Both the position numbers and the translations under genes were made by a program. From positions 1-64,000 of IMG/VR virus record IMGVR_UViG_3300033153_015063: a stretch of 64,000 nucleotides of DNA, one strand, 5' to 3'. The notes under the pieces are model-generated. The model saw nothing but the letters and a program-made list of their open reading frames with translations. It made no database searches and was not told the DNA's origin. Positions 5,007-46,145 of this stretch are shown one piece after another. Position 1 is the first letter of the stretch. Each line of letters begins with the position of its first letter.

Positions 5007-5046
5007 ATGAAAGATACACACTAGATGGAGTTTAAAAAGATTCTTA

Positions 5047-5772
5047 TCAAATTTTCCTGAACACCATAAAGTGATGAAACCCACGTAGTAGGAATTTATT
5101 CTTTGTAGCACGATAGTGCCAGAGACCACCGGTCCCGGCCTGGTTCCTGACAGTGACAGAGATGTATTCGACTGGTTCAAAGTCTCGTTCAAGGAATAAT
5201 TGGTAGATACGCCAGCCTGCCGGTATGAACCTACCCTTTTTACTCTCATCCCCAATAAGCCAACCGACTGGCCCGCCACTCTTCAGGACTCTGTGAATCT
5301 CATCAATGACCTCCGCCATCGCCTCGAAGAAAGCATCGTCAGAGACAGGTATTTTACCTATATCTTCAGGATTATCTCCATAGTCGATGTTATCTCCATA
5401 AGGTGAATCGCAGAACACGGCGTCTATTGAATCCTCATTGAACACCTCACTGAGATTCCTAGCGTCGCAGAGTTCAATGTCGTCTCGATGCACATGCACA
5501 TCTGACCCAACAGCCTCTCGATCCATCATTTCAGCGACGTCGATGGTTGTTCCAGACCCACAAAATGGGTCGAGAACCAGATCACCTGGTTGGGTCCAGA
5601 GATGTAGGAAGTTCCAGATTACCCTGGCGGGTGTAACACCCCGGTATTTGTTATCACCACCTTTCACCTGCTTGTCACTCTGGGTCGGAAAATCCCAGAG
5701 AGTAGTGGTCTCTGGTTGGACCCCAACTCTCTTAACAAGTTCTTCTGGTAGATCATCCTCGAAGAAACTCAT
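5047..5772 (-). CDS. DNA methyltransferase (motif I before motif IV)
   Basis: DPFCGSGTT then DSPY, HRVLKSGG. Confidence 0.85.
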   Translation of the reverse strand: MSFFEDDLPEELVKRVGVQPETTTLWDFPTQSDKQVKGGDNKYRGVTPARVIWNFLHLWTQPGDLVLDPFCGSGTTIDVAEMMDREAVGSDVHVHRDDIELCDARNLSEVFNEDSIDAVFCDSPYGDNIDYGDNPEDIGKIPVSDDAFFEAMAEVIDEIHRVLKSGGPVGWLIGDESKKGRFIPAGWRIYQLFLERDFEPVEYISVTVRNQAGTGGLWHYRATKNKFLLRGFHHFMVFRKI

Positions 5773-11759: not shown

Positions 11760-13721
11760 TTACACTTCCACCTCAGCTTCGAGTGCGTGTAAGAAGATAA
11801 AATCACGGCGGTGGCTCGGGTCCGTACCCATCAACTCCTCGAAAGCATTGGCCGTTGCCTCTTCATCCTCTATCTTGACCTGTATCAGAGTTCTACTATC
11901 AGGGTCCATCGTGGTTTCCCATAACTGGTCTGAGTTCATCTCACCCAGACCTTTGTATCGTTGAATCTCCATCTTACCAGTCCTGGTCAGCATCTTCTCA
12001 ACTACCTGTTCCTTCTCTTCCTCATTTATAACGTAGACAACTGAACGGCCCTTCGTTATTTTGTAGAGTGGAGGGCAAGCAACGAACACATGACCCTCTC
12101 TTATAAGAGTTGGGAGATATCTGAAAAAGAAGGTTAGTATAAGTATCTGGATATGGGCCCCATCTTCATCAGCATCACACATTATTATTATACGATTATA
12201 TCTGAGGTCATCATAATTGAAAATGCCAGTCAACTCGATCCCTGTCCCTATTACAGAAATCATCGACTGTATTTCACGGTTCTTCAGCACCTGACCCACG
12301 TCTACCTTCTCGACATTCCGCACTTTTCCTCGAAGAGGAAGAATTGCCTGTGTACGTCTGTCACGACCCTGTTTTGCCGTCCCACCGGCCGAGTTACCCT
12401 CTACTATGAACAACTCACACTCATCAGTATTCCGTGATGAACATGGTACGAACGATCCCTGGCTTTTCGGTAAGCCTCGCCTCTTACCTTTAGTTGCTTC
12501 TCTGGCCCTCTTGGCAGCCTCACGGGCCTTCCTCGAAGTGATTGCCCTTTCCACTATCAGCTTCGACTCTCGGATGTTTTTATCCAACCACTTCGACAGG
12601 TGCTCAGATACGACGTTATCAACTATTTTTCTGACCTCGGCGTTACCCAATCTGTACTTGGTCTGACCCATGAACTCTGGCTCAGGGACCTTCAAGGATA
12701 TTATTGATACGAGACCTTCTCTCACGTCTTCACCGCTGAGGGAACCATTCTTGTTGAGTCCGTGCTTCTCCGAGAATGAATTGATGGTCCTGGTGAAAGC
12801 AGACCTGAACCCCGCTGCGTGGGTTCCGCCTTCGATGGTTGGGATATTGTTGACGAAGGAAAGGAAGGTCTCACCATCGGCATAAGTATAGTAGAAGCCA
12901 ATCTCCACCAGCACTTCATCCCTGGTCTGGGAAATATACTCTGGTTTGTGGTGAATGGCACTCTTGTTACCTTTCAATTTCAAAACATAATCTTTCAAAC
13001 CACCTTTATGATGGTAGATAACCTCGTCCTCGTCGAGGTAGGTAAAGATGATAGCCAGACCGGGATTGAGATACGCCAGTTCATCACAGCGTTTTGAAAT
13101 CCTCTCCTCTGAAAATTTCCTAGGCCCGAACATCGTCTGGTCTGGCCTGAACCTGATAAGAGTTCCGGTCCCTCTCACCGGAACCTCCGTCAACTCCCTG
13201 GGTATCGAAGCATCCGTTAATTTCTTCGTGGTCGATTTGGTTAACGACAGCCGTGAAATTGGGGCATTAGCAACCCCCCGGGTGTATGACACCATCCAGA
13301 GCTTGTTTTGACGCCATACGTATGCTTCCAGGGTATCAGACAGGGCATTGGTCACCGACACCCCAACACCATGTAACCCACCAGAGACCTTGTAAGCACA
13401 CTTGTCAAACTTACCACCAGCATAGAGTGAGGTAAGAACCACCTCCAGGGCACTGGAACCACCGAACCTGGGGTCAGGATGCTTTCCAGTGGGGATACCC
13501 CTACCATTATCCTTGATGCTGACAAATCCACCTTTTTCAACGACTATGTTTATCTGGTCACAATAACCTGCGAGTGCCTCATCAATCGAGTTGTCGAGTA
13601 CCTCCCACAGCAGACGATGGAAACCACCTTCACCAACGTCATCAATGAACATGGCCGGACGTTTTCTGACTGCGTCAATACCATCAAGAGCTACGATGTC
13701 TTTGGCAGTATAACTTCCCAT
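11760..13721 (-). CDS. gyrB: Type IIA topoisomerase / DNA gyrase subunit B
   Basis: VRKRPAMF, EVLDNSIDE, DNGRGIP, SGGLHGVG, EGNSAGG, PLRGK, DADEDG, RYKGLGEM. Confidence 0.95.
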   Translation of the reverse strand: MGSYTAKDIVALDGIDAVRKRPAMFIDDVGEGGFHRLLWEVLDNSIDEALAGYCDQINIVVEKGGFVSIKDNGRGIPTGKHPDPRFGGSSALEVVLTSLYAGGKFDKCAYKVSGGLHGVGVSVTNALSDTLEAYVWRQNKLWMVSYTRGVANAPISRLSLTKSTTKKLTDASIPRELTEVPVRGTGTLIRFRPDQTMFGPRKFSEERISKRCDELAYLNPGLAIIFTYLDEDEVIYHHKGGLKDYVLKLKGNKSAIHHKPEYISQTRDEVLVEIGFYYTYADGETFLSFVNNIPTIEGGTHAAGFRSAFTRTINSFSEKHGLNKNGSLSGEDVREGLVSIISLKVPEPEFMGQTKYRLGNAEVRKIVDNVVSEHLSKWLDKNIRESKLIVERAITSRKAREAAKRAREATKGKRRGLPKSQGSFVPCSSRNTDECELFIVEGNSAGGTAKQGRDRRTQAILPLRGKVRNVEKVDVGQVLKNREIQSMISVIGTGIELTGIFNYDDLRYNRIIIMCDADEDGAHIQILILTFFFRYLPTLIREGHVFVACPPLYKITKGRSVVYVINEEEKEQVVEKMLTRTGKMEIQRYKGLGEMNSDQLWETTMDPDSRTLIQVKIEDEEATANAFEELMGTDPSHRRDFIFLHALEAEVEV

Positions 13722-18884: not shown

Positions 18885-19226
18885 ATGACCAGAATAGAGT
18901 TTGATGTCACCAGGGCAGACCTCGTTGGATCGAGTTTTATTGCCTTCCTGATTATGTCCATTGCTATAACAATGGATTTCCTTGGTATAGGTGGTGGGCT
19001 TCAATTCGACCTATGGATGTATGTTGTATTAATAATATTCCTAATACCAATCTCTTTGGTGATGTTTCAGACAATCGCAAAAATAACAAATGATTTTATT
19101 GCGTCTGGTATCTGGATAGCATTCCCCTGGATTTTCACTACCATAGCACCAAACCAATTGATTGATGTTGGTGTCTGGTTCGTAATGATAGGAACTCTTC
19201 TATGGTTCCTGTGGGAATCGGTCTAG
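18885..19226 (+). CDS. Small membrane protein
   Basis: MTRIEFD start after CGAACTCTTTAAATAC box; about 4 TM segments. Confidence 0.65.
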   Translation: MTRIEFDVTRADLVGSSFIAFLIMSIAITMDFLGIGGGLQFDLWMYVVLIIFLIPISLVMFQTIAKITNDFIASGIWIAFPWIFTTIAPNQLIDVGVWFVMIGTLLWFLWESV

Positions 19227-19828
19227 GAAAGGTAGGCGTTGACTTCGTAACGTCCTGTATCGTGCCTGTACCATGAGAGTACCAGGATGGAGTTTTTGAT
19301 TACCTTCCACTCTTCGTCACCTACATCGTCTTTGAATACCCTGGCCATCTCGATACGGGCCCTACCTTCTCTTCCCAACAACATCCCACTCCAACGAGTA
19401 TAATCCTCCTGAAGTGGGACCACCCCGTTATCTTCCATCGACTCAAAGATGTCGTCCAGGGGAATCGCACGATGATAGTGGCTGGTCAAAGGGTACAACT
19501 TATCATTGATTTTATTTTTGATGTTTTTTGGGAGAGTGACCTGGTTTTTAAAATCAGCCACCAGTGGCGGTTTGACCTCGAATTGCTCAAGAGAAAAGTG
19601 TTTTTTGCACCTGTTACACCATATCGTTTTACCCCGGCGAACGATGTCAGATGACCCACATTCGATACAGGTTGTACTCAGGACAACACCTTCACTCATT
19701 GCCTGAATGAAGCGTTCCTCATCCAGGGCTGGTGCATTGCCGACCGGCCCCTTGTAAACCGTAGCTCCCTCTTCGTAGACATACCTATAGCGGTTACCTG
19801 AGCCTTCTGGGATTTCAACGGTGGTCAT
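19223..19828 (-). CDS. VEIPPGSG-module protein, copy 4 (module, Zn ribbon, unknown domain)
   Basis: MTTVEIPEGSGNRYRYVYEEGATVYKGPVG; WCNRCKKHF. Confidence 0.85.
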   Translation of the reverse strand: MTTVEIPEGSGNRYRYVYEEGATVYKGPVGNAPALDEERFIQAMSEGVVLSTTCIECGSSDIVRRGKTIWCNRCKKHFSLEQFEVKPPLVADFKNQVTLPKNIKNKINDKLYPLTSHYHRAIPLDDIFESMEDNGVVPLQEDYTRWSGMLLGREGRARIEMARVFKDDVGDEEWKVIKNSILVLSWYRHDTGRYEVNAYLS

Positions 19829-23403: not shown

Positions 23404-23931
23404 TTAATTCCTGTAGAAGATATTGAGAAGAATATCTGACTCTTTTTGAACCCTACGGCAATAGTTACATCTAACGAGTAGTGGGTTTGTTGATATAAGC
23501 GTCGAGGATGGTATGAGTGGTTCGTTGTCGACCCTACTGATGCAACCAGAGTTGTTGCATCTAACCACACCTTTTAGCACCCTTGGTGGTGTAACAACAT
23601 ACTTCGAAATTACTTCATATTCCTGGATAAGATTGATAGTTACGTTCGGGGAAATAATACCAATTTTGGAAATATCCTTCTGATTAATATATGTATCTTC
23701 GATTTTGATGATATCTTTTTTTCTCATCCTACAGATAAGGCCGTCGCCATCTTTTTTTACGACCTTCGTGTCAATGTTCATCACAACCGAGATTGTTTCA
23801 GATGGTATCAAGTTACTACCAAGTAGACCCATGACCCGGAGAACCAGGAAGGCCCTACCTCCTGTGATGTGGTCTATGACCATCCCATTGGCAATCTTCG
23901 AGACTTTTAGCGTCTCACGTTCCTGCTTCAA
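23404..23931 (-). CDS. pyrI: Aspartate carbamoyltransferase regulatory chain
   Basis: KIANGMVIDHI, KKDIIKIE, CNNSGCIS, RCNYC. Confidence 0.9.
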   Translation of the reverse strand: MKQERETLKVSKIANGMVIDHITGGRAFLVLRVMGLLGSNLIPSETISVVMNIDTKVVKKDGDGLICRMRKKDIIKIEDTYINQKDISKIGIISPNVTINLIQEYEVISKYVVTPPRVLKGVVRCNNSGCISRVDNEPLIPSSTLISTNPLLVRCNYCRRVQKESDILLNIFYRN

Positions 23932-23997: not shown

Positions 23998-24474
23998 TTA
24001 TGCACGCCTATCCCTTCCACTACCAACCTTCATCCTCTTCAAGAACTCCTCCTCCGTCAACTGAGGGCTATCCCCGACCGGGCCCTTGTAGATGGTTTTA
24101 CCGCCTTCGTAGATGTACCTGTATCTGTTGCCTGAACCTGGGGGAATCTCGACTATGGCACCTTTCACCTTCTCCCTCACTGGACGCTTCGTAAACTTTT
24201 CTCTCTTATGTTTTACCCACTTCTCAAGTTCGGCTTTACACTCCTCGCCATCCCAATCCATCGGTAAGATAAGGTTGCCCATCATATACTCATCATACCA
24301 TCTCTTATTCCACTCGCCCTGCTTACCATGTATCTCTGTCCCAAGATGCCTTCCAAACTCGTTGGGGTTGGCACTTCCATCGTGTGCTATAGCATGGAGT
24401 AGATAGTCCTCGTACTGATTGGGTGTCATAGCCCAGACGCCACCCTCTAACGATACATAGGTGTATCTTGGCAT
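23998..24474 (-). CDS. VEIPPGSG-module protein, copy 5 (module at C-terminus)
   Basis: Ends ...AIVEIPPGSGNRYRYIYEGGKTIYKGPVGDSPQLTEEEFLKRM... Confidence 0.8.
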   Translation of the reverse strand: MPRYTYVSLEGGVWAMTPNQYEDYLLHAIAHDGSANPNEFGRHLGTEIHGKQGEWNKRWYDEYMMGNLILPMDWDGEECKAELEKWVKHKREKFTKRPVREKVKGAIVEIPPGSGNRYRYIYEGGKTIYKGPVGDSPQLTEEEFLKRMKVGSGRDRRA

Positions 24475-24523
24475 ACATGAGGAAAGGCATAAGGTATTTA
24501 TATCCTTATCGCCATGCATCGTC

Positions 24524-24748
24524 ATGCCCCTGATACCTGAAGAGGTCCGTGAAAAAACAGGCCTGATGGTCGTCACCGCCCTGGGACTTTTCCTAGCACT
24601 CCAGTATTCTGTTGTTGTATCAGACATTTTCGAGGCTTATCTCCCAATGGGCGACAGTCTTATTATCCAGTTGGTTTATCTATTATTAATCACGATAATC
24701 GTGGTATACGCAGTCATCTTTGTTGAGAGACGTTTTGGTTCATCTTGA
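24524..24748 (+). CDS. Small membrane protein
   Basis: Two TM segments; divergent from copy 5 across one TATA region. Confidence 0.55.
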   Translation: MPLIPEEVREKTGLMVVTALGLFLALQYSVVVSDIFEAYLPMGDSLIIQLVYLLLITIIVVYAVIFVERRFGSS

Positions 24749-24770
24749 TAGTAGTGCTTTTTCTCTGTTC

Positions 24771-25018
24771 GTTGCATTTTTCTATCAATTATAATCATCA
24801 GTGAAACTGACGAGAACCCCCTTATCAACTTCGGTTATAATGTTGCATTTTTCTATCAATTATAATCATCAGTGAAACGTTACGGACCTTTGTGCTAAAG
24901 AGGTTAAGGTCATTGTTGCATTTTTCTATCAATCATAATCCTCAGTGAAGCCCTCAGTATGTAGGGTGAGCTCAAGAAGGCTGGAGTGGTTGTATTTTTC
25001 TATCAATCGTAATCATCA
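24771..25018 (-). CRISPR. Satellite CRISPR array B: 4 repeats (one degenerate), 3 spacers
   Basis: 37-bp repeat at 24771, 24842, 24915, degenerate at 24989; spacers 34, 36, 37 bp. Confidence 0.9.
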
Positions 25019-25927
25019 AAAGTCCAGAACGCTGGTGTTTTTATCTGTTTCTTTGCTTATTAGATTTTTCCAGTCTTCAGGATTTTTCAGGAACGACCTA
25101 AAATCCAGACCTTCGAGTAGACCAAAGAACTGGTCGAAGTCGGGCTCGCCCTGGTCTGGGATGGTAATACCCTGCTGTTCGGGGTACTCAGGAACCAGTG
25201 GAAGAGTAATGAGCTCGATGTTCCGTTTGATGAGCTCGATGTTATCAGGTTCATTGACCCGGGCCATCACCCCTTTCAATCCATCAAACGGTAGTGCTTT
25301 GACGCTGATAACCTTCTTAGCTATCTTAATGGCCCTCTTCTTCCCAATACCATTGACACCATCAATGTTATCAGATGGGTCCCCCATCATCGCCTTCATA
25401 AAAAGGAACTGTTCTTTTATATCTCTATACTCATCCGGGTAGTCTTTGAAGTCGTCGATGGTGAAGGGTTCTTTCCCCCTTGGGTTCCAGATGGTAATAA
25501 CATCGTCCACGAGCTGACGGAAATCCCTATCTGATGATACAATGACAATATTATCCTCAATCTTATCACAATACATATCTGTCATAATTGCTATGACATC
25601 GTCAGCTTCAACATCAGGATACCGGAGGTGAGGAATACCCAGGGCGTCGAGAATCCTGGTGAATATCTCAATCTGAGCATAAAAGGTTTTTTCCATGTCA
25701 ACGGATCGGTTGGCCCTGCTACTGGTTTTTTTGTAAGTAGGGTGTATCTCCAACCTACGCTTACTGATACCACCATCAAACACATAAACAACATCATGTC
25801 CAGGGAATTTAGTGATGGTGTTACGGAACATAGCCAGCATCGAGAAGACGGTCCCGTTGGTGAGTTTTTGGCCCATCGTACTGTGGGCCATCCAGGCCTG
25901 GTTATTACCATCAAAGATGATTACCAT
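25016..25927 (-). CDS. 5'-3' exonuclease / flap endonuclease (Pol I N-domain type)
   Basis: FDGNN, VFDGG, YK, EADDVIA, SSDRDF, GDPSDNIDGVNGIGKKRA. Confidence 0.9.
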   Translation of the reverse strand: MVIIFDGNNQAWMAHSTMGQKLTNGTVFSMLAMFRNTITKFPGHDVVYVFDGGISKRRLEIHPTYKKTSSRANRSVDMEKTFYAQIEIFTRILDALGIPHLRYPDVEADDVIAIMTDMYCDKIEDNIVIVSSDRDFRQLVDDVITIWNPRGKEPFTIDDFKDYPDEYRDIKEQFLFMKAMMGDPSDNIDGVNGIGKKRAIKIAKKVISVKALPFDGLKGVMARVNEPDNIELIKRNIELITLPLVPEYPEQQGITIPDQGEPDFDQFFGLLEGLDFRSFLKNPEDWKNLISKETDKNTSVLDF

Positions 25928-25963: not shown

Positions 25964-26464
25964 CTATCGTTTTTTATCTATTCGTCGGCGTGTCAAGCTT
26001 CTCGGTTTCAGGTCGGGTTCAAGTTCCCTGATAAGCACGTTCATCCTTTTCCCCTTCTCGGTGAGACCGCCCTGCCACACCCAATACCGCTCACCGCCAT
26101 GCGGGAACCTTCCTTCATCGGATTCCCAATCTACGAGTCCGTGCCGATACAGAACTGCCAACGTCCTGACGTTGAACAACTGCTGGTCGGTGGTCCCTAT
26201 TGTATGGATTGGTGCATTCGGATGAAGAGTCGAGAGCATGAGGACCCCTTCTTTCTGTGCATTCGAGAGTTTTCTGTATGTCTGGCGTAATTGTACGTCA
26301 AGCACGTCGATCCCCTTTATATCGTCACCAATCATCCCCTTCAAGAACTCCTCCTCCGAAAGCTCAGGTGCTTCTCCCACAGGCCCCTTGTAGACCGTAG
26401 ATCCACCTTCGTACTCGTACCTGTATTTATTCCCTGAACCCTCAGGTATCTCTACAGTGGTCAT
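25964..26464 (-). CDS. VEIPPGSG-module protein, copy 6
   Basis: MTTVEIPEGSGNKYRYEYEGG; CGAACTCTTTAAATAC promoter. Confidence 0.85.
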   Translation of the reverse strand: MTTVEIPEGSGNKYRYEYEGGSTVYKGPVGEAPELSEEEFLKGMIGDDIKGIDVLDVQLRQTYRKLSNAQKEGVLMLSTLHPNAPIHTIGTTDQQLFNVRTLAVLYRHGLVDWESDEGRFPHGGERYWVWQGGLTEKGKRMNVLIRELEPDLKPRSLTRRRIDKKR

Positions 26465-26622
26465 TGGAGAGTGATAGGGCCGGAGAGTATTTAAAGAGTT
26501 CGGGAGGTTTATTACCACCGTCATCATCTATTGACCGCCACCGAAGTCAATCATACCAGTCAATGAAGGCACTATACACTTCCTCTCCATCTTCCTTTTT
26601 CATCAAAGTTAGACCACTTTGT

Positions 26623-27498
26623 TCAGAAATCCTCGGCTACATCGAATCTTTTCTTCTCCCGCATCTCCAGTGAATCTGCACGTTCTGTAAAGACAACATT
26701 CCCACCGACCTTCTCTCTGATAATAGTCCGTAGGTTCTTATCCACATCATAGCCTATCCCCTGCCGATCCAGGTCCCTGGCGACCGCCAACGTCGTCCCG
26801 GACCCGCAGAAAGGGTCCAGAACTACCTCGTTTTTGTGTGAAAACAGCGTTATCAGGCGAAAGGGTATCTCCGGGGGAAAGGCTGCGATATCCTCTTCTA
26901 AACGCCCCGGAATGGGCAAAACATTGGTGATGTCCCAGACGTTCAGATACCACTTCTCGGACTGGAACCGTTCCAGGTCAATCCCGGAGAGATTCTTCAG
27001 GTCCTTCGAGACCGCCTTGTGATTGTGCTTCCCCTTTTGCCAGATGAGAATAGATTCCTGGATGTTGTCGGGATAGTAGTACATGGGATATGGATGCTGC
27101 ACTACGACGCCAGAACGTCTACTGGTTCTGATGTACCCTTCGGGCTTTCTCCAGACGATACGGTCTCTGTAGATCCACTTCAGATCCGCCTGGTCATGCA
27201 GCTCCAGAGAAGAATTAATTATCGACCTGGTGTTCATCCACAAGTCAGATACGATGGGATACTTGACCCCATCTACTATGATATCGTCTATGACGATGCA
27301 GGCGATACGTCCCCTCTTCAGAACCCTGTGCATCTCCTTTAGGACCCGTGTCATAAACGAGAGATAGGTGCCATAGTTTTCGAAGAGACCTGGGTAGTCG
27401 AACGGAGCGTTGTAGTAAGGCGGAGAGGTCACAATGAGGTCCACACTCTCATCCTTGATTTCTTCCATGTTTTCACATGACCCAAAAATAACCTTCAT
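26623..27498 (-). CDS. N4/N6 DNA methyltransferase (beta class)
   Basis: TSPPY, AAFP, DPFCGSGTT. Confidence 0.9.
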   Translation of the reverse strand: MKVIFGSCENMEEIKDESVDLIVTSPPYYNAPFDYPGLFENYGTYLSFMTRVLKEMHRVLKRGRIACIVIDDIIVDGVKYPIVSDLWMNTRSIINSSLELHDQADLKWIYRDRIVWRKPEGYIRTSRRSGVVVQHPYPMYYYPDNIQESILIWQKGKHNHKAVSKDLKNLSGIDLERFQSEKWYLNVWDITNVLPIPGRLEEDIAAFPPEIPFRLITLFSHKNEVVLDPFCGSGTTLAVARDLDRQGIGYDVDKNLRTIIREKVGGNVVFTERADSLEMREKKRFDVAEDF

Positions 27499-28003: not shown

Positions 28004-28443
28004 GTTACATTTTTCTATCAGTCATCAATGGAACCGTTCTCCACAAGTCCCTATTGTTACATTTTTCTATCAATCATAATCCTCAGCGAAACGGACGTCT
28101 AACAATGAGTCGTAGAGAGTACAATGATCGTTGCATTTTTCTATCAATTATAATCCTCAGTGAAACATGGCATGGCTGTCGCTGAAGGGAGAGATGCTTA
28201 TTATAATCCTCAGTGAAACCAGTACAAAGTGAAGAAGAAGAGAGGCTTTTGCTGCTTCGTTGCATTTTTCTATCAATCATAATCCTCAGTGAAACAAAAT
28301 GCGTTGAGAGAGTTGGGGATACCATTTCGTATGTTGCATTTTTCTATCAATTATAATCCTCAGTGAAACTACTCCATGTTGACGGTCCACATCCAGGTAT
28401 TTGTGTGTTGCATTTTTCTATCAATCATAATCCTCAGTGAAAC
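28004..28443 (-). CRISPR. Main CRISPR array A: 7 repeats (one partial, distal ones degenerate), 6 spacers
   Basis: Repeat GTTTCACTGAGGATTATAATTGATAGAAAAATGCAAC (minus) at 28407, 28333, 28259, 28200 (partial), 28130, 28056, 28004; 3' ATGCAAC end as in Cas12f/Cas14 repeats. Confidence 0.95.
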
Positions 28444-28444
28444 C

Positions 28445-30166
28445 CTACTTTTTCACTCTATGTAGGGTCCCTTTCGCCTTTTTTAGGAGCTCAGTTGTCT
28501 GCTTCAACCTCTCCGTTCTGTTCTTAACTCTGTCGCTCATAATAAGGTCACGGTTTTCAACCAACACCCCGGCGAAATGAGCTGCGTTGGTAGCTGCGTT
28601 CCGGTCAGCGTTGAGTTGGCGGCCGCAGTCACCACATCTGAACCATGAGTGCCAGTGTTCCCAGAAGACGCCAGATTTCCCTACATCTCCATGTTTACCC
28701 CACCCACCACACACTGAACACCGTTTGCAAGCCAGCGTCAAAGGAATCTTCTGGATAACGATGTTGGGAATCTCTCTCAGCTTATATGTGAGTTGCCAAT
28801 CTACGATATGGAAAGGCCACCTATTGGCCATCCTCCTGATAAAGTCCGGTAGGAGTTCCTCCTCGCAACCTACCATGTTTTCCAATCTACCAGCTTTGTC
28901 CCTACTTCCGGTGAAATCGTGGATGCAGACCAGGATGTTCCCGCCGAGTTCTTTGAGTTTGTTGGCAATCATCCTGGTTGCGTTGTGTAGCTCGTGCCTT
29001 AGAACCAACGACGCTTTTGTGAGATAAATAGATGCCTTCTTATACTTGATAGAAAGGTTCTTTTTTGTTATCGGGCGTTGATCTTTTCCACGACGGGTTG
29101 CCTTGGATTGTCTTTCCGCATACTTATCGTCACTTGACTTCCAGTCACGAAGCATTTTCTTTCCTTTATGTATGTAATGAAACAACTCTCGGCCAGTTCT
29201 GGCATCCAACACAACCAACGACATTGGACGATAGATACCACCATGAACACCAACAATATAGTCTATTTCATCTTTTTTGTAATCATAAACGTCCACATCA
29301 ACGGATAGTGTGATGTGAAGCCACCACTTACCATCCTTTGGTATCAAAGTCCCTGAACCATGTTTCAGGATCGCTTCAAGTGTAAGCTCGCACCATCCCT
29401 CCTGATAGTGTTTCTTACCGAACTCTTTCAACACCCCGGATCGGTCCCTGATTTGTGATGACTCTACCTGGGCTGAAAAAATACCATTACGATTTATTAC
29501 TCCAACACTAAAGACAATCCCAAAATTATTACCGTTTTTCTTAATTTTGATGGACCTGTTATGCAGTTCAATAACATTATACTTTTCATAGCTTGGTCTG
29601 TTCTTGTTATTGACGGGTTTCCTTGGCCCTTTTTTGGTTGATGTTCTGTTCATAATCTCATCAACCAACTTTGTTTTAATATCTGGGATCTGTTTTCTGG
29701 CTATTTTAAGTAGGATTTTTCTATACTCTCCTATTTCCTTTTTGTATTTCTTATTTCCCTTTTTTCTGGGGTAAGCCGGTGGATTGGCTACTTGACTGGT
29801 CAACCATGGCCACCATAACTTATATTTGTTGAGTAGAACATAGCTATCGGTACGCCAGAGACGGCTTATCCAATTGGACAATGAGGAACGAAAGTTGGCC
29901 AGAACAACCGATACCTGTTCCTGAACAGTAGTTGATGAAAGTAGTGTGGTATTGATTTTCTGATCTTTATTAATTCCTTGAGAAAGACGTAGAATATGTG
30001 GCGGGAGTTTAGGAGACTTAGGAATCTTACTGCCTTTGTAGTAAGATGGTATCATAATTGATGCATAGTCAGCTACATCTCTGGCCTGCCCAAGGGCCAC
30101 AAACAGACGTTCAGAGTCCTCTTTCTTGAACGTCAATGGGACCTGGATTGTTCTGATTGATTTCAT
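28445..30166 (-). CDS. cas12: Type V Cas12f-like effector with non-canonical, probably inactive RuvC
   Basis: IRTIQVPL N-terminus, RuvC-I VGVHGG, RuvC-II CIHDF, Zn finger CSVC...CGDC, RuvC-III NADRNAA; array starts 2 nt after stop. Confidence 0.85.
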   Translation of the reverse strand: MKSIRTIQVPLTFKKEDSERLFVALGQARDVADYASIMIPSYYKGSKIPKSPKLPPHILRLSQGINKDQKINTTLLSSTTVQEQVSVVLANFRSSLSNWISRLWRTDSYVLLNKYKLWWPWLTSQVANPPAYPRKKGNKKYKKEIGEYRKILLKIARKQIPDIKTKLVDEIMNRTSTKKGPRKPVNNKNRPSYEKYNVIELHNRSIKIKKNGNNFGIVFSVGVINRNGIFSAQVESSQIRDRSGVLKEFGKKHYQEGWCELTLEAILKHGSGTLIPKDGKWWLHITLSVDVDVYDYKKDEIDYIVGVHGGIYRPMSLVVLDARTGRELFHYIHKGKKMLRDWKSSDDKYAERQSKATRRGKDQRPITKKNLSIKYKKASIYLTKASLVLRHELHNATRMIANKLKELGGNILVCIHDFTGSRDKAGRLENMVGCEEELLPDFIRRMANRWPFHIVDWQLTYKLREIPNIVIQKIPLTLACKRCSVCGGWGKHGDVGKSGVFWEHWHSWFRCGDCGRQLNADRNAATNAAHFAGVLVENRDLIMSDRVKNRTERLKQTTELLKKAKGTLHRVKK

Positions 30167-30179
30167 GTGACAGTAAGTG

Positions 30180-30420
30180 TGGGGGGCAAAAGCCCCCCTT
30201 GATAGATTTCGACCGCCCCGCACTTTTCCCCTAACTCCGAAGAGATTGGTGACTTATGTACAGTTGGATAGCAGTACTCTGGGCCCAAACTGATGCACAG
30301 CCTGGGGGAACATACAACAGTCCCTGTTACCGGCGGTACGCAACCCCGGATTTCCGGTCTGGGAATCGAACCCAGCCTGGTTGGCCCAATTGACAACCAG
30401 TTCCAACATCCGAACATCTG
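30180..30420 (-). ncRNA. Putative tracrRNA
   Basis: TATA at 30443-30450; hairpin CCAGGCUG-UGCAU-CAGUUUGG whose loop pairs with repeat AUGCA; UCUAUCAA (30199-30206) pairs with repeat UUGAUAGA; terminal GGGGGGC-UUUU-GCCCCCC hairpin. Confidence 0.75.
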
Positions 30421-30452
30421 GTACTTGATAGCGAGGAATGTGTTTATAAACA

Positions 30453-32136: not shown

Positions 32137-32925
32137 CTAAAATTCCAGTACGTCATAGTTATTGAAGAACCTCTCAAAGTCAGGATTCACCTCATACCCG
32201 ATAGACCTACGGCCCATCCGTCGTGCAACTCTGGTTGTTGTGCCAGTCCCGAGAAAAGGGTCCATCACTACCTCGGTAAGATAGGAAAAGCCCCTGATGA
32301 TACGTATTGGGATCTCCTTTGGAAAAGGGGCAGGATGGTCACGGTTTCCACTTGGAGCTGGCTTTATCTTCCAGACCGAGCTCTTCTTTATCTCCACCCA
32401 CTGGTCCTTACTGAGCTTCGAGGCTTCCTTTATCTCGCCAGAGAGATGAGATAGGTCACGCTTCCCAGATTTCTCAAATTCAAGGATAAATTCATGCATG
32501 AAATTGATTGGAAGGGCCCCTGGATAGGGGTAAGATCCGATAGGAGACTGAACAGAATTGGCCTTCTCCCAGATGATCTCTCGCTTGAACGCAAACCCCA
32601 ACCCCACACAATCGTCGATGGTCCAGCCGACCAGATTGATGGAGTGGAACAATTGCTTATCAGAGGCCGGGACAGGCAGGTTCATCAGATTGACAAACAT
32701 CTTACGCCCAGGGGCAAGTACACGGAGGCACTCTTTCCATACGTCTCTCATTTTGAGACGCCATGAATCTGGATTGGTCGTGTTACCGAGGTCGTCTGGT
32801 AGATTTGAGTATTTCTTTGCGTTGTAGTATGGCGGGCTGGTCACCACGAGATGAACAGAACAATCATCCACCTCGGACATATCCCTCGAATCTCTGACGT
32901 GATAGATAGGCTCAAAAAACTCCAT
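32137..32925 (-). CDS. N4/N6 DNA methyltransferase (beta class)
   Basis: TSPPY, HPAPFP, DPFLGTGTT. Confidence 0.9.
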   Translation of the reverse strand: MEFFEPIYHVRDSRDMSEVDDCSVHLVVTSPPYYNAKKYSNLPDDLGNTTNPDSWRLKMRDVWKECLRVLAPGRKMFVNLMNLPVPASDKQLFHSINLVGWTIDDCVGLGFAFKREIIWEKANSVQSPIGSYPYPGALPINFMHEFILEFEKSGKRDLSHLSGEIKEASKLSKDQWVEIKKSSVWKIKPAPSGNRDHPAPFPKEIPIRIIRGFSYLTEVVMDPFLGTGTTTRVARRMGRRSIGYEVNPDFERFFNNYDVLEF

Positions 32926-33289
32926 CTGTCTCACTGTGATAATCACATTCCCGTGAACAATATTCATCATCGTCGTAACAGAGTTTGTTGCATCCATTCC
33001 CCTGACATCTACCAGTAGGTTCGAAATCTTCTTCTTCTGTATCTATGTAGTCGATGATTGGGCATAACCACTGGTTGGCAGTTGGGTCAACTATCTCGCC
33101 ATCTGGAGTAGTAAGCCACCAATGATCTTCCAGTAGTTTTGGTCGGGCGGCTAGGGTAACAAAACCACTACAGAGTCTGAGTTCAGGAAAGATATCGTTC
33201 ATCTCTATACAGAGTTCTTTACACCTGTTAATCTTTTTTTCAAGTGTCGTTTTCTCAATCCACTCTTCGTAGATAGGTGACAAACTCAT
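32912..33289 (-). CDS. Hypothetical protein
   Basis: C...HWW...DPT pattern; upstream promoter box. Confidence 0.5.
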   Translation of the reverse strand: MSLSPIYEEWIEKTTLEKKINRCKELCIEMNDIFPELRLCSGFVTLAARPKLLEDHWWLTTPDGEIVDPTANQWLCPIIDYIDTEEEDFEPTGRCQGNGCNKLCYDDDEYCSRECDYHSETDGVF

Positions 33290-33871: not shown

Positions 33872-34207
33872 TTACTTATTACTACCACTATTCAGACCGC
33901 CATTTTTAATATATATCATTGTATCGAATAGCCTGAAACCTATATCCTTGAAGAATAATGCCTGCCGAAAACTTGTTCCTGTTTCGCTACCATCTACAGT
34001 GGCGTCACCCACGACCCAGACAACCACGCCGCCCTTTTTTGTTACTCGAAACAGTTCTTCTGCTACGTTCTTAAAGTCGAAGTTGTAGCCATCATACTCT
34101 CTGAGGTCATCGTATGGTGGACTTGTCACGGTCAGATCCACAAAGTTATCTGGCATACCCGCCATTGTAATCAAGCAGTCTTCATTGTATATCATATTCA
34201 TTTCCAT
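33872..34207 (-). pseudogene. Truncated DNA methyltransferase (N-half only)
   Basis: IYNEDC, TSPPY, stops after DTMIYIK; no motif I follows. Confidence 0.7.
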
Positions 34208-34691
34208 CTTCTTTCTCCAGATTTTCCAGTAGCTTTTCTGCATCCTTCTTCAATCGGTCCAATTCCTCCAGAACCTCATCACGTAGTGAACCATCATTGT
34301 TACGGACCTTTCCACCACGCCTCAGACAAGCCCAGTTACGTCGGAGGTCCTCTCTCTTTGACCAGACCCGCCATCTCAACGCTTTGTACCCTTCCCAAAA
34401 CATAGTGGCGTTCGACGGCCTGTAGTTGTTGTTCATTTTGGGCGGCCTATAGTAGAACTCTTCAAGGTCATAGATGTTTGAGTAGTAGAGAAGCGTCTGA
34501 ACGGAATGGGGGACCTTCATGGCCGTATGGTACTCCCATCCATTTGCTTCCATCAGATACTTGGTCTCTGATGCACAACAGAATCCTGTGGTCATCAGCT
34601 CGTAGACCAACAACCGTGCTGCGGCCTCGTTGGCACCAATGTTGTTCCGCCTGCCGCCCCCTGTTCCCTTTTGCTGTCCTGAAGTCAACAT
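34182..34691 (-). CDS. Hypothetical protein
   Basis: TATA about 30 nt upstream. Confidence 0.5.
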   Translation of the reverse strand: MLTSGQQKGTGGGRRNNIGANEAAARLLVYELMTTGFCCASETKYLMEANGWEYHTAMKVPHSVQTLLYYSNIYDLEEFYYRPPKMNNNYRPSNATMFWEGYKALRWRVWSKREDLRRNWACLRRGGKVRNNDGSLRDEVLEELDRLKKDAEKLLENLEKEDGNEYDIQ

Positions 34692-35815: not shown

Positions 35816-37084
35816 TCAGAAATCCATCACATCGCTTTTTACCATGATACTACCATCTTCGTCTATAGGAACCATTTCGCCTATCCTTTTCATAGCAATG
35901 TCATAGTAACGTTTTTCCCTCTCAAAACCAATATAATCCCTACCACATCTGGCTGCTGCGATAGCTGTAGTGCCCGACCCCATGAATGGGTCCAGGATGA
36001 TACCTCCACTTGGAGTTGCTGTGAGTCTGCAAAGATATTCTATCAACTCCAATGGTTTTACAGTTTCATGGTCGTTGTACTCACATCGTTCTGACCTCGA
36101 TGCTTTAGCACAGTAAAAAAATCTTGAAGGTCGGTCATCATTACCAACCTCATTGTCCAATAAATTACCTACATCCTCATCCAATATGAGATTGGCCGGA
36201 TAACGCCCTTTTGGATTATGGCGTTCCTCACCTAGATTTCGTGGTGGGGTCTTACCTTTACCCCATATCCCAGCACCAGGGACACTGGTCCTCCGTTCGC
36301 TATCTAGAACCTTACTCTCTATCCTCGCACCGTCGATGTTCAATCCGGCCACACCCCATTTCAAAGCATTCTCAACAAAGGTTCCATCGAGAGGTTTCAT
36401 AGCAACGAGGATGGTTTCCCATGCTGGTTTGAGTGAACTCCTCCAACCATCCCATATCTTTGCCTCCTCAGTCGCTGGAGTGGTAATATTGATCTCTCGT
36501 CTGCCAGCTTTCCAACCACCAGGAGCTTCATAGCCGCCATCCTTCTGGTTGATAAATATCCTTGCTCGCTTTTCATCGACACCAACGACCTCCCTCTCGG
36601 CTCCGGCGGCCTTGTCAATTCCCTTCGAGATATCGGTTCCCTTACCCCAACCCGACCCATACAACCACATCATTGTATCTCTAATTATCCATCCAGCATC
36701 CTCGATGGCACAGGCCAACCGATGCCAAGTTCTGGTACCAGAAAAAGCGAGAAAGAAAGCTCCTGGTTTTGCTACTCTTAAAGCCTCTACGGACCACTTA
36801 TAGTGCCACTCGTAAAGTTTTTGCATTTGTTTAATATGATTATGAGAACCGCCAAATTTTGGTGATGGTAAGTGCCTCGGCCATTTAATTCGCCTTTCTC
36901 CTATACCTGGTTTTTGAAATGGCTGAACGTCGCCTTCTTTCCAAGGCGAGTCCCACTCTGACATAAACGATAATCCATAAGGTGGATCTGTGATGATGGT
37001 ATCAATGCAATTATCAGGAAGATGCACAGGCATACCAACCAGGCAATCCTCGTTGTAGATGATGTCGGTTTCAATCTCGTCCAT
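35816..37084 (-). CDS. N4/N6 DNA methyltransferase (intact paralogue of split gene)
   Basis: TDPPY, GRYPAN, HETVKP, DPFMGSGTT. Confidence 0.9.
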   Translation of the reverse strand: MDEIETDIIYNEDCLVGMPVHLPDNCIDTIITDPPYGLSFMSEWDSPWKEGDVQPFQKPGIGERRIKWPRHLPSPKFGGSHNHIKQMQKLYEWHYKWSVEALRVAKPGAFFLAFSGTRTWHRLACAIEDAGWIIRDTMMWLYGSGWGKGTDISKGIDKAAGAEREVVGVDEKRARIFINQKDGGYEAPGGWKAGRREINITTPATEEAKIWDGWRSSLKPAWETILVAMKPLDGTFVENALKWGVAGLNIDGARIESKVLDSERRTSVPGAGIWGKGKTPPRNLGEERHNPKGRYPANLILDEDVGNLLDNEVGNDDRPSRFFYCAKASRSERCEYNDHETVKPLELIEYLCRLTATPSGGIILDPFMGSGTTAIAAARCGRDYIGFEREKRYYDIAMKRIGEMVPIDEDGSIMVKSDVMDF

Positions 37085-37096: not shown

Positions 37097-38326
37097 TCAG
37101 AAATCCATCACGCTACTATCTCTCAACAAACCTTCGGTCTCGGCCCTGTCTATAGCCATCCTCACGTACTTCTCTGAAGTATCGCACCCCAACCAATCCC
37201 TACCCTCCTGGGTAGATACAACGGCTGTGGTCCCACTTCCCATGAAAGGGTCGAGAACGACACCGTCCGATGGGCAACATGCCTTGATGATTGGCCTGAT
37301 GAGCTCCTGTGGAAACACGGCATGATGGGCCTGCTTGAAGGGTTTGGTATTCTGTAAGATTGATACCACCCCATTCTCATCGTCCAATGCCCCATACTTC
37401 CCCATGTCATATCTGGCAGTAGATAACTCGTGTAGTAGTGTCTCCAGATTCTCTATGATGACGTCAATGGAATCTGAGTACCAGTCAATGGTTCTACGGT
37501 AGTGCCCCTGTTCTCTGATTGCTTCCCGATCATAGTAGTAGGATTCCTGCTTCGTGAGTACAAGGAAATATTCGTGTGCGATAGTAGGGCGATCCTTGGC
37601 GGATTCTGGCCGGATATTCCATTTCAACCATGGTACGACGGCCCGCCAATACCACCCAGCAGCCTGGAGAGACATTGCCAGACGCCAGGGGATACCAACC
37701 AAATCCTTCGGTTTTACACCCTCTGGGACCCTCACGGACATCCAGTTACCAACGTCCCCTACCTTCCCATCGACCTGTCCCCATGTCCTGTTTGCAGCGT
37801 ATGTATCACCGATATTCAGCCACAGAGACCCGGTGTCTTTGAGTACCCGCCAGTATTTCCCGAACACTGACGTCAGGTTGGAAACGTAGATGTTGGGTTC
37901 TGGTTCCAGACCAAGATGCCCCTTCCAAGCATCACACCATTTACAGTAGTATGACGTATATCCCTCGCCTCTGATGACACTCTCGCTCATCACCCGGTTC
38001 GCACCTACAGAAGAAGGTCGGTCAGGGTGGTTTTTACCACCCCTCGCAGGTGTAAAATGTTCCATCCACTCATGGGTACATTCATAGGGTTCCAAATCGT
38101 AACATTCTTTGTTCTGGGGATGGTAACAAAGTAACTCTTCACCATCACTGACCTGTTTACATTGCGGGCATCTCCGAAACCTTTTCCCACCCCACACCTC
38201 GGCTTTACCTAGATACTCTCTCAACATCCAGAATGGTGGTGATGTGACTATCAGGTCTACTATCCCATCTGGTAGAGTGTCGGCATACTCCATCGTATTC
38301 GATAAAGCGACTGTGTTGAGTGCCAC
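37097..38326 (-). CDS. N4/N6 DNA methyltransferase with Cys-rich insert
   Basis: TSPPF, HHAVFP, DPFMGSGTT; GTG start 30 nt after TTTATAAA. Confidence 0.88.
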   Translation of the reverse strand: MALNTVALSNTMEYADTLPDGIVDLIVTSPPFWMLREYLGKAEVWGGKRFRRCPQCKQVSDGEELLCYHPQNKECYDLEPYECTHEWMEHFTPARGGKNHPDRPSSVGANRVMSESVIRGEGYTSYYCKWCDAWKGHLGLEPEPNIYVSNLTSVFGKYWRVLKDTGSLWLNIGDTYAANRTWGQVDGKVGDVGNWMSVRVPEGVKPKDLVGIPWRLAMSLQAAGWYWRAVVPWLKWNIRPESAKDRPTIAHEYFLVLTKQESYYYDREAIREQGHYRRTIDWYSDSIDVIIENLETLLHELSTARYDMGKYGALDDENGVVSILQNTKPFKQAHHAVFPQELIRPIIKACCPSDGVVLDPFMGSGTTAVVSTQEGRDWLGCDTSEKYVRMAIDRAETEGLLRDSSVMDF

Positions 38327-38396
38327 TATCGAGAAATGGCCGCCCGTCTTTATAAAGAGTTTGAAAGCGTTCTGGAACTCCTTCATTTCCAGAACT

Positions 38397-38568
38397 CATT
38401 TTTCTATCAATCATAATTCTCAGTGAAACTGGCACAACGTCAATACTACCGTTCTACAACGACATTTGTTGCATTTTTCTATCAATTATAATCCTCAGTG
38501 AAACAAGGTGGGGTGGGCAAGACACTAAACCATCTATCTGTTTATGCTTTATGCCAGTTGCATTTTCT
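38397..38568 (-). CRISPR. Satellite CRISPR array C: 2 repeats plus a remnant
   Basis: Repeats at 38397-38429 and 38468-38504, 38-bp spacer; GTTGCATTTTCT remnant at 38557. Confidence 0.8.
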
Positions 38569-44114: not shown

Positions 44115-46145
44115 CTACTTCTTACTTGGACAGTTCATATCAAGACACATATTCCAGGGTTGCTTCCCTTTTGTCTTGATTACAACCTTCGGCGTGTTGC
44201 ACGACACACAGATTGCCCCGGTAACCTTGATATCACCCTGCCCGGGGAGTGGAAAGGTCCTGCTACAACCTGGATAACCCGAACATCCCACAAACCTTTT
44301 TCCCTTCCTGGAACGGCGTATTTTCAGGTCCTTCCCACAATCAGGGCATGGACCAACCACTTCACCGGATTGCTGAGCCCCAGATCCCATTTTTTTACTG
44401 ATTTCAGGTGTCCTCTTCAGCAACCCATCAATGATTTTATCCAGATTGTCTCTAGAGACAGTCAACACTTTATCTTTCGTGTTCTGACCATCGGCAATCA
44501 TGTCCATGTCAACTTCCAACTCCTTTGTCATGGTAGGTTTACTGATACCAGGTGCAAAGTCCATCAGGAGTTCCGCCAGTGCCATTCCATCTTGAGTTGG
44601 TCGGATATTCCCCTCGACATACCCACGATTGTAGAGCTTTGAGATGATTTCTGCTCTTGTAGATTTGGTACCAAGACCTTCGTTCTGCATCACCGAAACC
44701 AATGTGCCCTGTGAGAACCTGGAAGGTGGTTGGGTAGTTTTTTCTATTAATATTATAGTATTAACAGGTATCTTCTCATCCAATTTTAAGGAAGGCAAGT
44801 GGTTTGGTGGACTCCATCCATATTGATACACGTCTCTCCATCCCATCTCAATAATCCTTGAACCAACAGTAATAAAAAATTCTCCATCAATATCGAGTTC
44901 TACTTTAGTATATTCGTAGACGTAGTTTGGCATCAGCGTCGCCAGGAAGCGTCTGACAATGATATCAAACAGTTCGCTTTCGTCACCATTCATTGACCCG
45001 AAGAGACCAGTTGGATGGATAGGTGGATGGTCAGTGGTCTGTATCTTACCTTTACTCGGTCTTATCTTCGGGAGTCCGAGAACTACGCCGGCAGCATCAT
45101 AGATAGAACTGGTTGTGGGATACTCATTGAAGAACGACATTGTAATGTTCTTCAGACCGATACCTATTGGATAAACAGTATTGTCAGTACGTGGATATGA
45201 ACATATTCCTTTGAGATAGATGCTCTCGGACACATCCAATACCTTCTTGGCGTTCCAACCCAACACCCCAGTTGCCAGTCTGACCAATTCGGTTGTATCG
45301 AGTGGTGGTGGTGCCCATGCTTCCTGTCTCGTGGTGTCAACGTCGGATACCACGGCCTGTTTCGAACTCTCGATTCTGGTAAATATGTCTCTGGCTACTT
45401 TTTTATCGGTAAACTTACCTTCTGTGTGCCAGGCATCGAAGTTGCGGTTCTTGGTCAGATTCGCCTTGATTTTCCAGTATGGTGTTGGTTTGAAGTTCAG
45501 TATCTTCTTCTCACGTTCAACGATGAGGCATAGCGTCGGACTCTGGACCCTACCGACAGAGAGAAAACCTTTCCCCCTTCGTCCAGTCGACAGAGAGAAA
45601 AACCTGGTCAGAACAGCACCCCACACCAGGTCCACGAACTGGCGGGTTTCCCCCGCTGACGCCAGATTGTAGTCGAGACCGACGAGGTTCTTGAAAGCCC
45701 TTATCACCTCGATATTTGTCAAAGATGAAAATTGAGCTCTTTCGATAGAGACTCTGGGTCCTACCATCTTCACGATGTCGATAGCCTCCTTACCGATAAG
45801 CTCTCCTTCACGGTCATAGTCAGTGGCCACTATAATTTTATTCACTTTCTTCCCCAACATCTTCAGAGTCGCCACAATCTCTTTTTCAGAAGGTATCACA
45901 ATCGGGTTGGCATAGATGACATCCTTCAGATTCCCCAACTCCCAACTCTTGTATTTCTGAGGATACTCAACCTTCACGATATGCCCACGCAGACCAACGA
46001 TGTAGATGGTGTCGTTGCCATCATCATACGAGAAGTAGTAGATTGCACCATTCTTTCTGGTGATGTATCTGTTGCTGGGGGAGAGTATGTAAGCCAGCCT
46101 CTTCGCAGCTTTGGATTTCTCTGCTATGACCAGAGTATCTACCAT
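44115..46145 (-). CDS. topA: DNA topoisomerase I (type IA, archaeal-like)
   Basis: IAEK, ATDYDREGE, GRVQSPTL, SYPRTD, GLGTKSTR, C-terminal Zn ribbons. Confidence 0.95.
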   Translation of the reverse strand: MVDTLVIAEKSKAAKRLAYILSPSNRYITRKNGAIYYFSYDDGNDTIYIVGLRGHIVKVEYPQKYKSWELGNLKDVIYANPIVIPSEKEIVATLKMLGKKVNKIIVATDYDREGELIGKEAIDIVKMVGPRVSIERAQFSSLTNIEVIRAFKNLVGLDYNLASAGETRQFVDLVWGAVLTRFFSLSTGRRGKGFLSVGRVQSPTLCLIVEREKKILNFKPTPYWKIKANLTKNRNFDAWHTEGKFTDKKVARDIFTRIESSKQAVVSDVDTTRQEAWAPPPLDTTELVRLATGVLGWNAKKVLDVSESIYLKGICSYPRTDNTVYPIGIGLKNITMSFFNEYPTTSSIYDAAGVVLGLPKIRPSKGKIQTTDHPPIHPTGLFGSMNGDESELFDIIVRRFLATLMPNYVYEYTKVELDIDGEFFITVGSRIIEMGWRDVYQYGWSPPNHLPSLKLDEKIPVNTIILIEKTTQPPSRFSQGTLVSVMQNEGLGTKSTRAEIISKLYNRGYVEGNIRPTQDGMALAELLMDFAPGISKPTMTKELEVDMDMIADGQNTKDKVLTVSRDNLDKIIDGLLKRTPEISKKMGSGAQQSGEVVGPCPDCGKDLKIRRSRKGKRFVGCSGYPGCSRTFPLPGQGDIKVTGAICVSCNTPKVVIKTKGKQPWNMCLDMNCPSKK

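Follow-up and report, generated by a model that had tools for sequence, protein, structure and literature searches.

A virus-encoded Cas12f-like effector with a conserved His-His-Asp RuvC site, proposed to be an RNA-guided DNA binder

We analyzed the first 64 kb (64,000 nucleotides, which we will call the window) of the 242,596-bp IMG/VR contig UViG_3300033153_015063. On its minus strand, at 28445–30166, the window encodes a Cas12f-like effector protein in which histidines replace the aspartate and the glutamate of two RuvC catalytic motifs, while the third catalytic residue, an aspartate, is retained. The same His-His-Asp (H-H-D) triad is found in all five members of the protein's family, and the gene lies between a probable trans-activating CRISPR RNA (tracrRNA) and a CRISPR array. 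With moderate confidence, we propose that the effector is an RNA-guided DNA binder that is similar in function to Cas12m2 and that most likely does not cleave its target. Each of the natural Cas12 relatives that do not cut (Cas12k, Cas12m, TldR, and dCas12f) has brought to light another way in which RNA-guided DNA binding is used.

The effector is related to Cas12f

The effector gene and its motifs are located as follows:

28445–30166, minus strand: Cas12f-like effector gene, 573 amino acids plus a TAG stop codon (28445–28447)
29243–29245, minus strand: His308, at the position of the RuvC-I catalytic Asp; codon CAT, within DYIVGVHGGIYRP
28916–28921, minus strand: His416-Asp417 of RuvC-II, in VCIHDFTG; His416 (codon CAC, 28919–28921) is at the position of the catalytic Glu
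28625–28720, minus strand: zinc finger of the TNB domain (C483, C486, C511, and C514) with a family-specific insertion
28604–28606, minus strand: Asp521, the retained RuvC-III catalytic Asp; codon GAC, in LNADRNAA

A first-pass annotation, made from the letters of the window alone, had described an uninterrupted open reading frame (ORF) for a Cas12f-like effector with D-to-H and E-to-H substitutions in RuvC, with an intact RuvC-III motif (NADRNAA) and zinc finger, and with a tracrRNA and an array on its flanks. This description holds up. The ORF is intact, its coordinates and motifs are as given, and both Asp521 and the four cysteines (CCCC) are present. The protein has 573 amino acids if counted from the ATG at 30166. 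An alternative GTG start would give 592 amino acids, but we prefer the ATG because the homologues begin at the same MK(S/A)IRTIQ.

Sequence profiles and structure comparisons agree that the effector is Cas12f-like in fold and related to Cas12f. It matches the Cas12f1-like TNB domain of Pfam (PF07282) with 33 bits, which is above the gathering cutoff of 26.3. Among NCBIfam models, Cas12f2 ranks first (E = 1.2e-10; 40.8 bits, below the family cutoff of 450) and TnpB second (E = 1.7e-7; 30.8 bits, below the family cutoff of 100). A profile of the effector with its four close relatives and six more distant ones matched the solved Cas12f structures in the PDB at E = 2e-41 to 1e-30. With a profile of the five close relatives alone, the matches were limited to Cas12f and TnpB chains, and no Cas12m matched this profile at E < 0.01. 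We also built an AlphaFold2 model of the monomer, with a mean predicted local distance difference test (pLDDT) score of 76 and about 85–90 in the RuvC core. When this model was compared to known structures with Foldseek, the best 13 matches were all Cas12f chains (E = 1e-17 to 2e-12, with target-normalized template modeling scores of 0.40–0.61), led by AsCas12f (8j12, E = 1e-17). Cas12k appeared from the 16th rank, TnpB from the 24th, and Cas12m2 (8hio) was 39th with E = 1e-7. The protein has the compact, TnpB-like architecture, with WED/REC and a RuvC domain that is split by the zinc-finger TNB domain. What it lacks, relative to other Cas12f proteins, is the D-E-D triad and scores above the cutoffs of the curated models.

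Histidines at two of the three catalytic positions

Two alignments and the model agree on the substitutions. In a MAFFT alignment with the six more distant relatives, His308 aligns with the Asp of G(V/I)D.G and His416 with the Glu of LEDL. The profile alignment to solved Cas12f chains has the same register (GiDgG aligns to GVDMG, and leDLtg aligns to MEDLTG). And in the AlphaFold2 model, His308 closes strand β1, His416 closes β4, and Asp521 opens the helix after β5, so that by the model these residues are the three canonical catalytic positions of an RNase-H fold. The first-pass annotation had raised the concern that structural alignment might place acidic residues at the catalytic positions, but it is the histidines that are found there.

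All five family members have H308-H416-D521 instead of the canonical D-E-D. The adjacent Asp417 is invariant across all 11 aligned sequences. We did not find any mention of an H-H-D RuvC triad in the literature that we searched.

The zinc-finger loop of the family is altered as well. It has an insertion of about 10–13 residues; Glu503-His504-Trp505 and His492 are invariant, and Asp494 is usual. The column of Asp494 contains Arg in AsCas12f and in three canonical relatives. An Arg in the loop between the CxxC pairs is needed for cleavage by Cas12f, but the family has no conserved Arg in either of the columns that hold the TNB Arg of the canonical relatives or of AsCas12f. We also looked for a compensating glutamate on strand β5 and found no invariant acidic residue there among the five members.

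The H-H-D family is rare and ancient

An HMMER scan of 1.84 billion cluster representatives, which stand for about 15 billion proteins, identified only four relatives at E < 1e-30, giving a family of five. Their identities to the effector are:

P0002: 65%
P0003: 43%
P0004: 37%
P0005: 32%

The five proteins have 548–720 amino acids and are 30–65% identical to one another. All of them have H/H/D, and the motifs G[IVL]HGGIYR, [IVY]HD[FW]TG, and NAD.NA are kept in five of five. They form a monophyletic clade (support 100/100) whose stem is long; inside it, path lengths (nearest-row paths) reach about 2.5 substitutions per site, and 76 alignment columns are invariant. Nine of the 10 pairs have saturated synonymous divergence (dS), and the nonsynonymous divergence (dN) of the closest pair is 0.28. 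The codons for both histidines alternate between CAT and CAC, that is, they vary synonymously. Because H/H/D is kept at 30–65% identity, with saturated dS and synonymous changes in the His codons, recent decay is excluded. The first-pass annotation had pointed out that decay would be suspected if the close homologues all kept D/E; instead, both histidines are kept down to 30% identity. On this comparative evidence, the substitutions are old and have been kept by purifying selection.

Word-index protein searches found no further members of the family. No relatives were found in the 185,579 species-representative genomes of GTDB, nor any homologue in annotated phage records. One member (P0004, or LCGC14_0621350) is on a 137-kb contig from the metagenome of Loki's Castle sediment. 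Two of the five are on large virus-like contigs, one of which has archaeal-type promoters. About 2 kb from the gene for the nearest canonical (D-E-D) relative, its contig carries a gene for an MCM helicase.

A more distant relative, P0008 (L047:4001–5437), has H-E-D: a His at RuvC-I, with the Glu kept at RuvC-II. It adjoins two tyrosine-recombinase genes, has no array, and groups weakly with the H-H-D clade. It might be an intermediate, or its site might have changed in parallel.

A probable tracrRNA that covaries with the repeats

Upstream of the effector gene, we identified these features:

30441–30450, minus strand: TATA-like box TTTATAAACA, about 25 nt before the start of sequence conservation; also present in L001
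30170–30420, minus strand: candidate tracrRNA, which is also the 5′ leader of the cas mRNA
30359–30375, minus strand: hairpin like the T-arm of a tRNA, with the near-consensus T-arm CUGGGUUCGAUUCCCAG
30312–30318, minus strand: anti-repeat 1 of the tracrRNA
30199–30206, minus strand: anti-repeat 2 of the tracrRNA
30181–30198, minus strand: terminal G6/C6 hairpin of the tracrRNA

A non-coding stretch of about 285 nt upstream of the effector is conserved in all five loci, and 14 of the 33 base pairs in its consensus structure show compensatory changes. In this RNA, two segments whose positions are homologous across loci are complementary to the 3′-terminal ~20 nt of the cognate repeat (the handle), and they covary with it in four loci:

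Window: anti-repeat 2 TCTATCAA with handle TTGATAGA; anti-repeat 1 GTTGTAT with ATGCAAC (one G-U pair)
L001: anti-repeat 2 TTCCATCAA with handle TTGATGGAA; anti-repeat 1 GTTGCA with TGCAAC
L002: anti-repeat 2 AAACATCC with handle GGATGTTT; anti-repeat 1 GTCGCT with AGCGAC
L003: anti-repeat 2 TAGCATCCC with handle GGGATGCTA; anti-repeat 1 GTCGCA with TGCGAC

Because both anti-repeats covary with the handle, we take the upstream RNA to be the tracrRNA, which the first-pass annotation had placed beside the gene, and the comparative evidence for it is strong. (A plain scan for anti-repeats with RNAduplex was uninformative; the pairing is clear only from the covariation across loci.) Guide RNAs of Cas12f contain two repeat:anti-repeat duplexes. 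The repeat ends in ...AUGCAAC, as the Cas14a repeat does.

One TATA-like box precedes the tracrRNA, and we found no second one between 30441–30450 and the array that follows the effector gene (array B, below). Because of this layout, we think that the tracrRNA, the effector mRNA, and array B are probably one primary transcript.

The 5′ part of the tracrRNA (30349–30418, minus strand) resembles a truncated tRNA, with an acceptor-like stem, one arm, and the T-arm. L001 has the same T-arm conserved, and in L003 it is partly so. A true tRNA identity was not supported: the matches to Rfam's tRNA-Sec (E = 4.7) and mascRNA (E = 7.4) were not significant, and ARAGORN found none. This module could be a processing signal for RNase P or RNase Z.

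In L001, which encodes the closest homologue, a half repeat (CATCATAGGAAAATGCAAC) comes after the tracrRNA hairpin, and about 30 nt then lead into the start codon of the cas gene (L001:1107–1157). This arrangement looks like a natural fusion of tracrRNA, handle, and guide; it does not have a counterpart in the window. A scenario with a half-repeat/tracrRNA fusion has been described for the evolution of dCas12f (PMC10691335).

Small arrays are dispersed over the viral genome

Guide units occur at five or more places in the viral genome:

27968–28443, minus strand: array B, with five full 37-nt repeats, one 5′-only fragment, and a last unit with only the 3′ handle
24734–25025, minus strand: array A, with 4 units, the first of which has only the 3′ handle
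38393–38504, minus strand: mini-array C, with one full repeat, one spacer, and one repeat that is degenerate at its 3′ end
About 207.9 kb of the same 242-kb contig (L017:1650–1830): array with three repeats
About 145.66 kb of the contig (L012:4960–5040), plus strand: solitary handle-plus-guide unit with its own TATA-like box, TTTTTAAACA

The 37-nt repeat, read on the minus strand, is GTTTCACTGAGGATTATGATTGATAGAAAAATGCAAC. Array B directly abuts the effector gene, beginning 2 nt past the stop codon, which bears out the flanking array of the first-pass annotation. In array A, the place of the 5′ half of the first unit is taken by the end of a gene for a FEN-like nuclease.

Arrays also adjoin the homologues in L001, L002, and L003. 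Many of the units are irregular and keep only the 3′ handle of about 15–20 nt (L002:4690–6270, L003:12117–12731, and 28004–28027 and 24989–25025 of the window). Our proposal that the tracrRNA pairs with the 3′ end of the repeat explains these handle-only units. From start to start, the handles are spaced 30–123 nt apart, and some handle-only units are just 12–22 nt away from the next handle. In this virus, many small guide arrays are scattered along a genome that has no adaptation genes, and the irregular arrays suggest that they grow or persist without Cas1-Cas2.

The virus has about 14 guides, and L002 and L003 together have about 45. We searched for the targets of the guides. The guides of the window had no self-targets in the window, L012, or L017, either with as many as 5 mismatches tolerated over 24 nt or with seeds of 12 nt. 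Guides B1, B2, B4, and A1, the solitary guide from L012, and guide 2 from L017 matched only their own positions when compared with the whole of IMG/VR, where the complete 242-kb contig is also held.

A guide from L002 (L002:5742–5761) matches positions 892–911 (minus strand) of the window, within a helicase ORF (298–1890), with the flank ...TTCCAA. The first 15 nt match exactly and 17 of 20 nt match overall; about 0.6 matches with up to 3 mismatches are expected by chance. This borderline match may reflect targeting between related viruses, or it may be due to chance.

We also tried to identify the host from the repeat, but the 18-nt handle gave single chance matches in 27 unrelated GTDB genomes and was never in an array.

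Proposed function

We propose that a single archaeal-type promoter probably drives a transcript that runs from the tracrRNA through the effector ORF to array B. Each repeat would pair, by its last ~20 nt, with the two segments of the tracrRNA, and the effector would bind the RNA pair. One metal ion in the H-H-D site would then keep hold of the displaced strand, giving tight RNA-guided binding. The bound effector would stop its targets, perhaps competing mobile elements or host genes, from being transcribed or replicated. Double-stranded DNA cleavage with two metals is most likely impossible because D-E-D has been replaced and the Arg position of the zinc finger has changed.

The proposal is modeled on Cas12m2. 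Cas12m2 has a natural H-D-D site, and its structure by cryo-EM shows only a single Mg, held by the His and the RuvC-III Asp; this Mg binds a phosphate of the displaced strand (PMC10442227). Cas12m2 does not cut DNA and protects by silencing; reverting its site to D-E-D did not restore cleavage (PMC10442227). Our data show what the protein is, its substitutions and their conservation, and the RNA components. By analogy, we infer the loss of cleavage, the single-metal clamp, and the silencing of rival elements or host genes; the silencing role stays an extrapolation because no target was found for any guide. The lack of adaptation machinery, the gaps of 12–22 nt between some handle-only units and the next handle (compared to the 14–16-nt guides of binding-only dCas12f, PMC13472631), and the match of the L002 guide to the helicase gene lend binding weak support.

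Several observations weigh against binding without cleavage. His, His, and Asp are good ligands for transition metals, and here they are strictly conserved. His492, the usual Asp494, and Glu503-His504-Trp505 are conserved in the loop that, in Cas12f, bears the Arg that supports cleavage, and might belong to a rebuilt center. A survey of TnpB and Cas12 argues that activity is often retained where replacements are conserved and specific, and it documents compensating glutamates that are borne on loops (PMC10691335). The array of L002 has about 30 distinct guide units and looks like one for interference. And with no guide targets found, there is no sign of a bias towards promoters.

These observations lead to the main competing explanation, which we consider possible but clearly less probable than binding alone: His-His-Asp, perhaps with Asp417, His492, Asp494, Glu503, and His504, would form a working transition-metal or one-metal center that cuts or nicks DNA, or that acts in trans on single-stranded DNA or RNA. 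In favor of this, residues of the metal-ligand type are strictly conserved at both positions across 30–65% identity; the additional invariant His, Glu, and Trp are in a loop that reaches the active site in Cas12f; and conserved rearranged RuvC sites in other proteins were judged likely to be active (PMC10691335). The L002 array is also large and diverse. However, the RuvC-I Asp bridges both metals, and with His at this position, Cas12m2 has one Mg and no cleavage (PMC10442227). The failure of D-E-D reversion to restore cutting in Cas12m2 (PMC10442227) also argues against a rebuilt center, as do the lack of a conserved TNB Arg and of an invariant acid on β5. The more specific idea that the RuvC pocket is a His/Asp/Glu-rich transition-metal center, with Zn-, Mn-, or Fe-dependent chemistry unlike that of every known Cas12, seems unlikely to us. 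Candidate ligands for such a center, from sequence conservation, are His308, His416-Asp417, Asp521, His492, Asp494, and Glu503-His504. If a rebuilt metal center is correct, then the family is not a dead enzyme but a new catalytic solution for RNA-guided nucleases. The catalytic residues were not lost but were replaced by a strictly conserved His-His pair. The family offers a clean test of His in a RuvC site.

We also considered that the altered pocket might be used only for RNA maturation, either of the tracr-cas-array transcript or of the pre-crRNA, with DNA merely being bound. The tracrRNA, the ORF, and array B seem to share a promoter, so some processing is needed, and Cas12c and Cas12j process pre-crRNA in their RuvC sites (PMC10442227). 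However, Cas12c and Cas12j keep the D-E-D triad, and RNases of the archaeal host or the tRNA-like module could account for processing instead, so we think that this explanation is improbable.

Another explanation, which we consider somewhat more improbable, is that the effector is a targeting module that recruits an unlinked protein, as Cas12k does with Tn7 proteins and as dCas12f does with sigma-E. Other nuclease-dead derivatives of Cas12 and TnpB act in this way (PMC13472631, PMC10691335). But no neighboring protein is common to the five loci, and in a domain scan of the ORFs within about 10 kb on either side of the effector, we found no transposase, sigma factor, or recombinase. The same scan found no cas1, cas2, or cas4, in agreement with the first-pass annotation, which had noted that neither a transposase nor cas1/cas2 is nearby. 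Finally, the canonical catalytic residues are missing, as they might be in a decaying pseudo-effector without any function, but this is very improbable and is effectively refuted by the intact ORFs in five deeply diverged members, the saturated dS, the dN of 0.28 in the closest pair, the 76 invariant columns, and the coevolution of the RNA partners.

If the effector is a binder, then it would be a compact, natural DNA-binding protein with a defined guide RNA.

Comparison to known systems

Like the type V-F proteins (Cas12f or Cas14, such as AsCas12f, OsCas12f, CnCas12f1, and Un1Cas12f1), the effector is small, and its RuvC domain is split by a CCCC TNB domain. It also shares with them a tracrRNA with two repeat:anti-repeat duplexes and an array beside the gene. 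It differs from Cas12f in having H-H-D instead of D-E-D, in the altered Arg position of the TNB domain, and in the zinc-finger insertion with its invariant EHW. In contrast to Cas12f, the system is virus-borne, with dispersed mini-arrays and without cas1, cas2, or cas4. A survey of TnpB and Cas12 in PNAS made only a general remark that branches of Cas12f have altered sites (PMC10691335). What is new, on our best reading of the sequences, is an H-H-D variant of the Cas12f lineage.

The effector shares with Cas12m2 (type V-M) the His at the position of the RuvC-I Asp, the retained RuvC-III Asp, and a non-canonical middle residue. Cas12m2 is likewise compact, and miniature systems of this kind often lack an adaptation module at their loci. 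However, Cas12m2 is H-D-D and uses crRNA alone, while the effector's family is H-H-D and has a tracrRNA. The triads that have been listed for the Cas12m clades (HDD and HEK/HQK) share the His of motif I, and H-H-D is not among them. The likeness to Cas12m2 is probably convergence rather than membership. Because the ranking of structures and profiles places the effector in the Cas12f lineage rather than with Cas12m, its altered site probably arose separately, and the clade would count as one more origin of such a site in RuvC.

The CRISPR-associated and sigma-E-associated dCas12f proteins (Hoffmann et al. 2026, PMC13472631) are also derived from Cas12f. They are nuclease-inactive RNA-guided binders, and a subset of them are beside arrays. 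In these proteins, which are from Bacteroidetes, RuvC was partly lost by C-terminal truncation, and no tracrRNA-like species was detected (PMC13472631). In contrast, the effector is full length with an intact RuvC-III, it is archaeal-viral, and its tracrRNA is supported by covariation. The binding-only dCas12f uses guides of 14–16 nt (PMC13472631).

TldR and Cas12k are TnpB or Cas12 scaffolds with an inactivated RuvC that are used only for targeting. TldR uses an omega-RNA, has no array, and has variable replacement residues, while the effector has true arrays. Cas12k (from type V-K CRISPR-associated transposons) is linked to Tn7, and domains of tnsB, tnsC, or tniQ were not found in the ORFs that flank the effector. 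The dCas12f proteins with sigma-E and TldR are marked by neighbors of the rpoE, helix-turn-helix, or flagellin type and by an omega-RNA-like single guide; no conserved sigma-factor or helix-turn-helix partner was found among the five loci.

Genomic context and host

The first-pass annotation had inferred an archaeal mobile element, and both the origin of the contig in IMG/VR and its promoters fit this. Of 83 called genes, 16 have a TTTAWA hexamer at −30 to −26 relative to the start codon; at other upstream positions the hexamer hardly occurs. Such a peak is what archaeal TATA boxes of leaderless transcripts produce, so it points to an archaeal host, with many leaderless genes and archaeal-type promoters. 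Shine-Dalgarno-like motifs peak at −15 to −6. We also considered the similarity of GyrB to phage proteins as a clue to the host, but it was uninformative.

The window encodes gyrase A, gyrase B, topoisomerase IA, a FEN-like nuclease, a helicase, and many unmatched ORFs. Some of these genes, and others, are at:

11760–13721: gyrase B
57977–60355: gyrase A
44115–46145: topoisomerase IA
51972–56157: plus-strand block with a CCA-adding/poly(A) polymerase-HD protein, a RelA/SpoT-like protein, and a protein with the N-terminal domain of PPDK (pyruvate, phosphate dikinase)
23404–23931: PyrI-like protein, the regulatory subunit of aspartate carbamoyltransferase

The GC skew flips within the plus-strand block, at 52–56 kb.

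Paralogous ORFs with the motif G.KYRYEY...YKGPVG, which has no database match, are near the CRISPR module (23998–24627, 25964–26527, and 19226–19828, minus strand). The motif is also found in L001 (L001:155–829), upstream of the homologous module.

At least 8 ORFs in the window have DNA methyltransferase domains. ORFs of the N6/N4 type, at least seven, suggest heavy DNA modification against restriction; they are on the minus strand at 2537–3520, 4305–5279, 26623–27498, 32137–32997, 33872–34243, 35816–37084, and 37097–38386. One pair of methyltransferase ORFs might be a split gene, with a GIY-YIG insert at 3493–4314.

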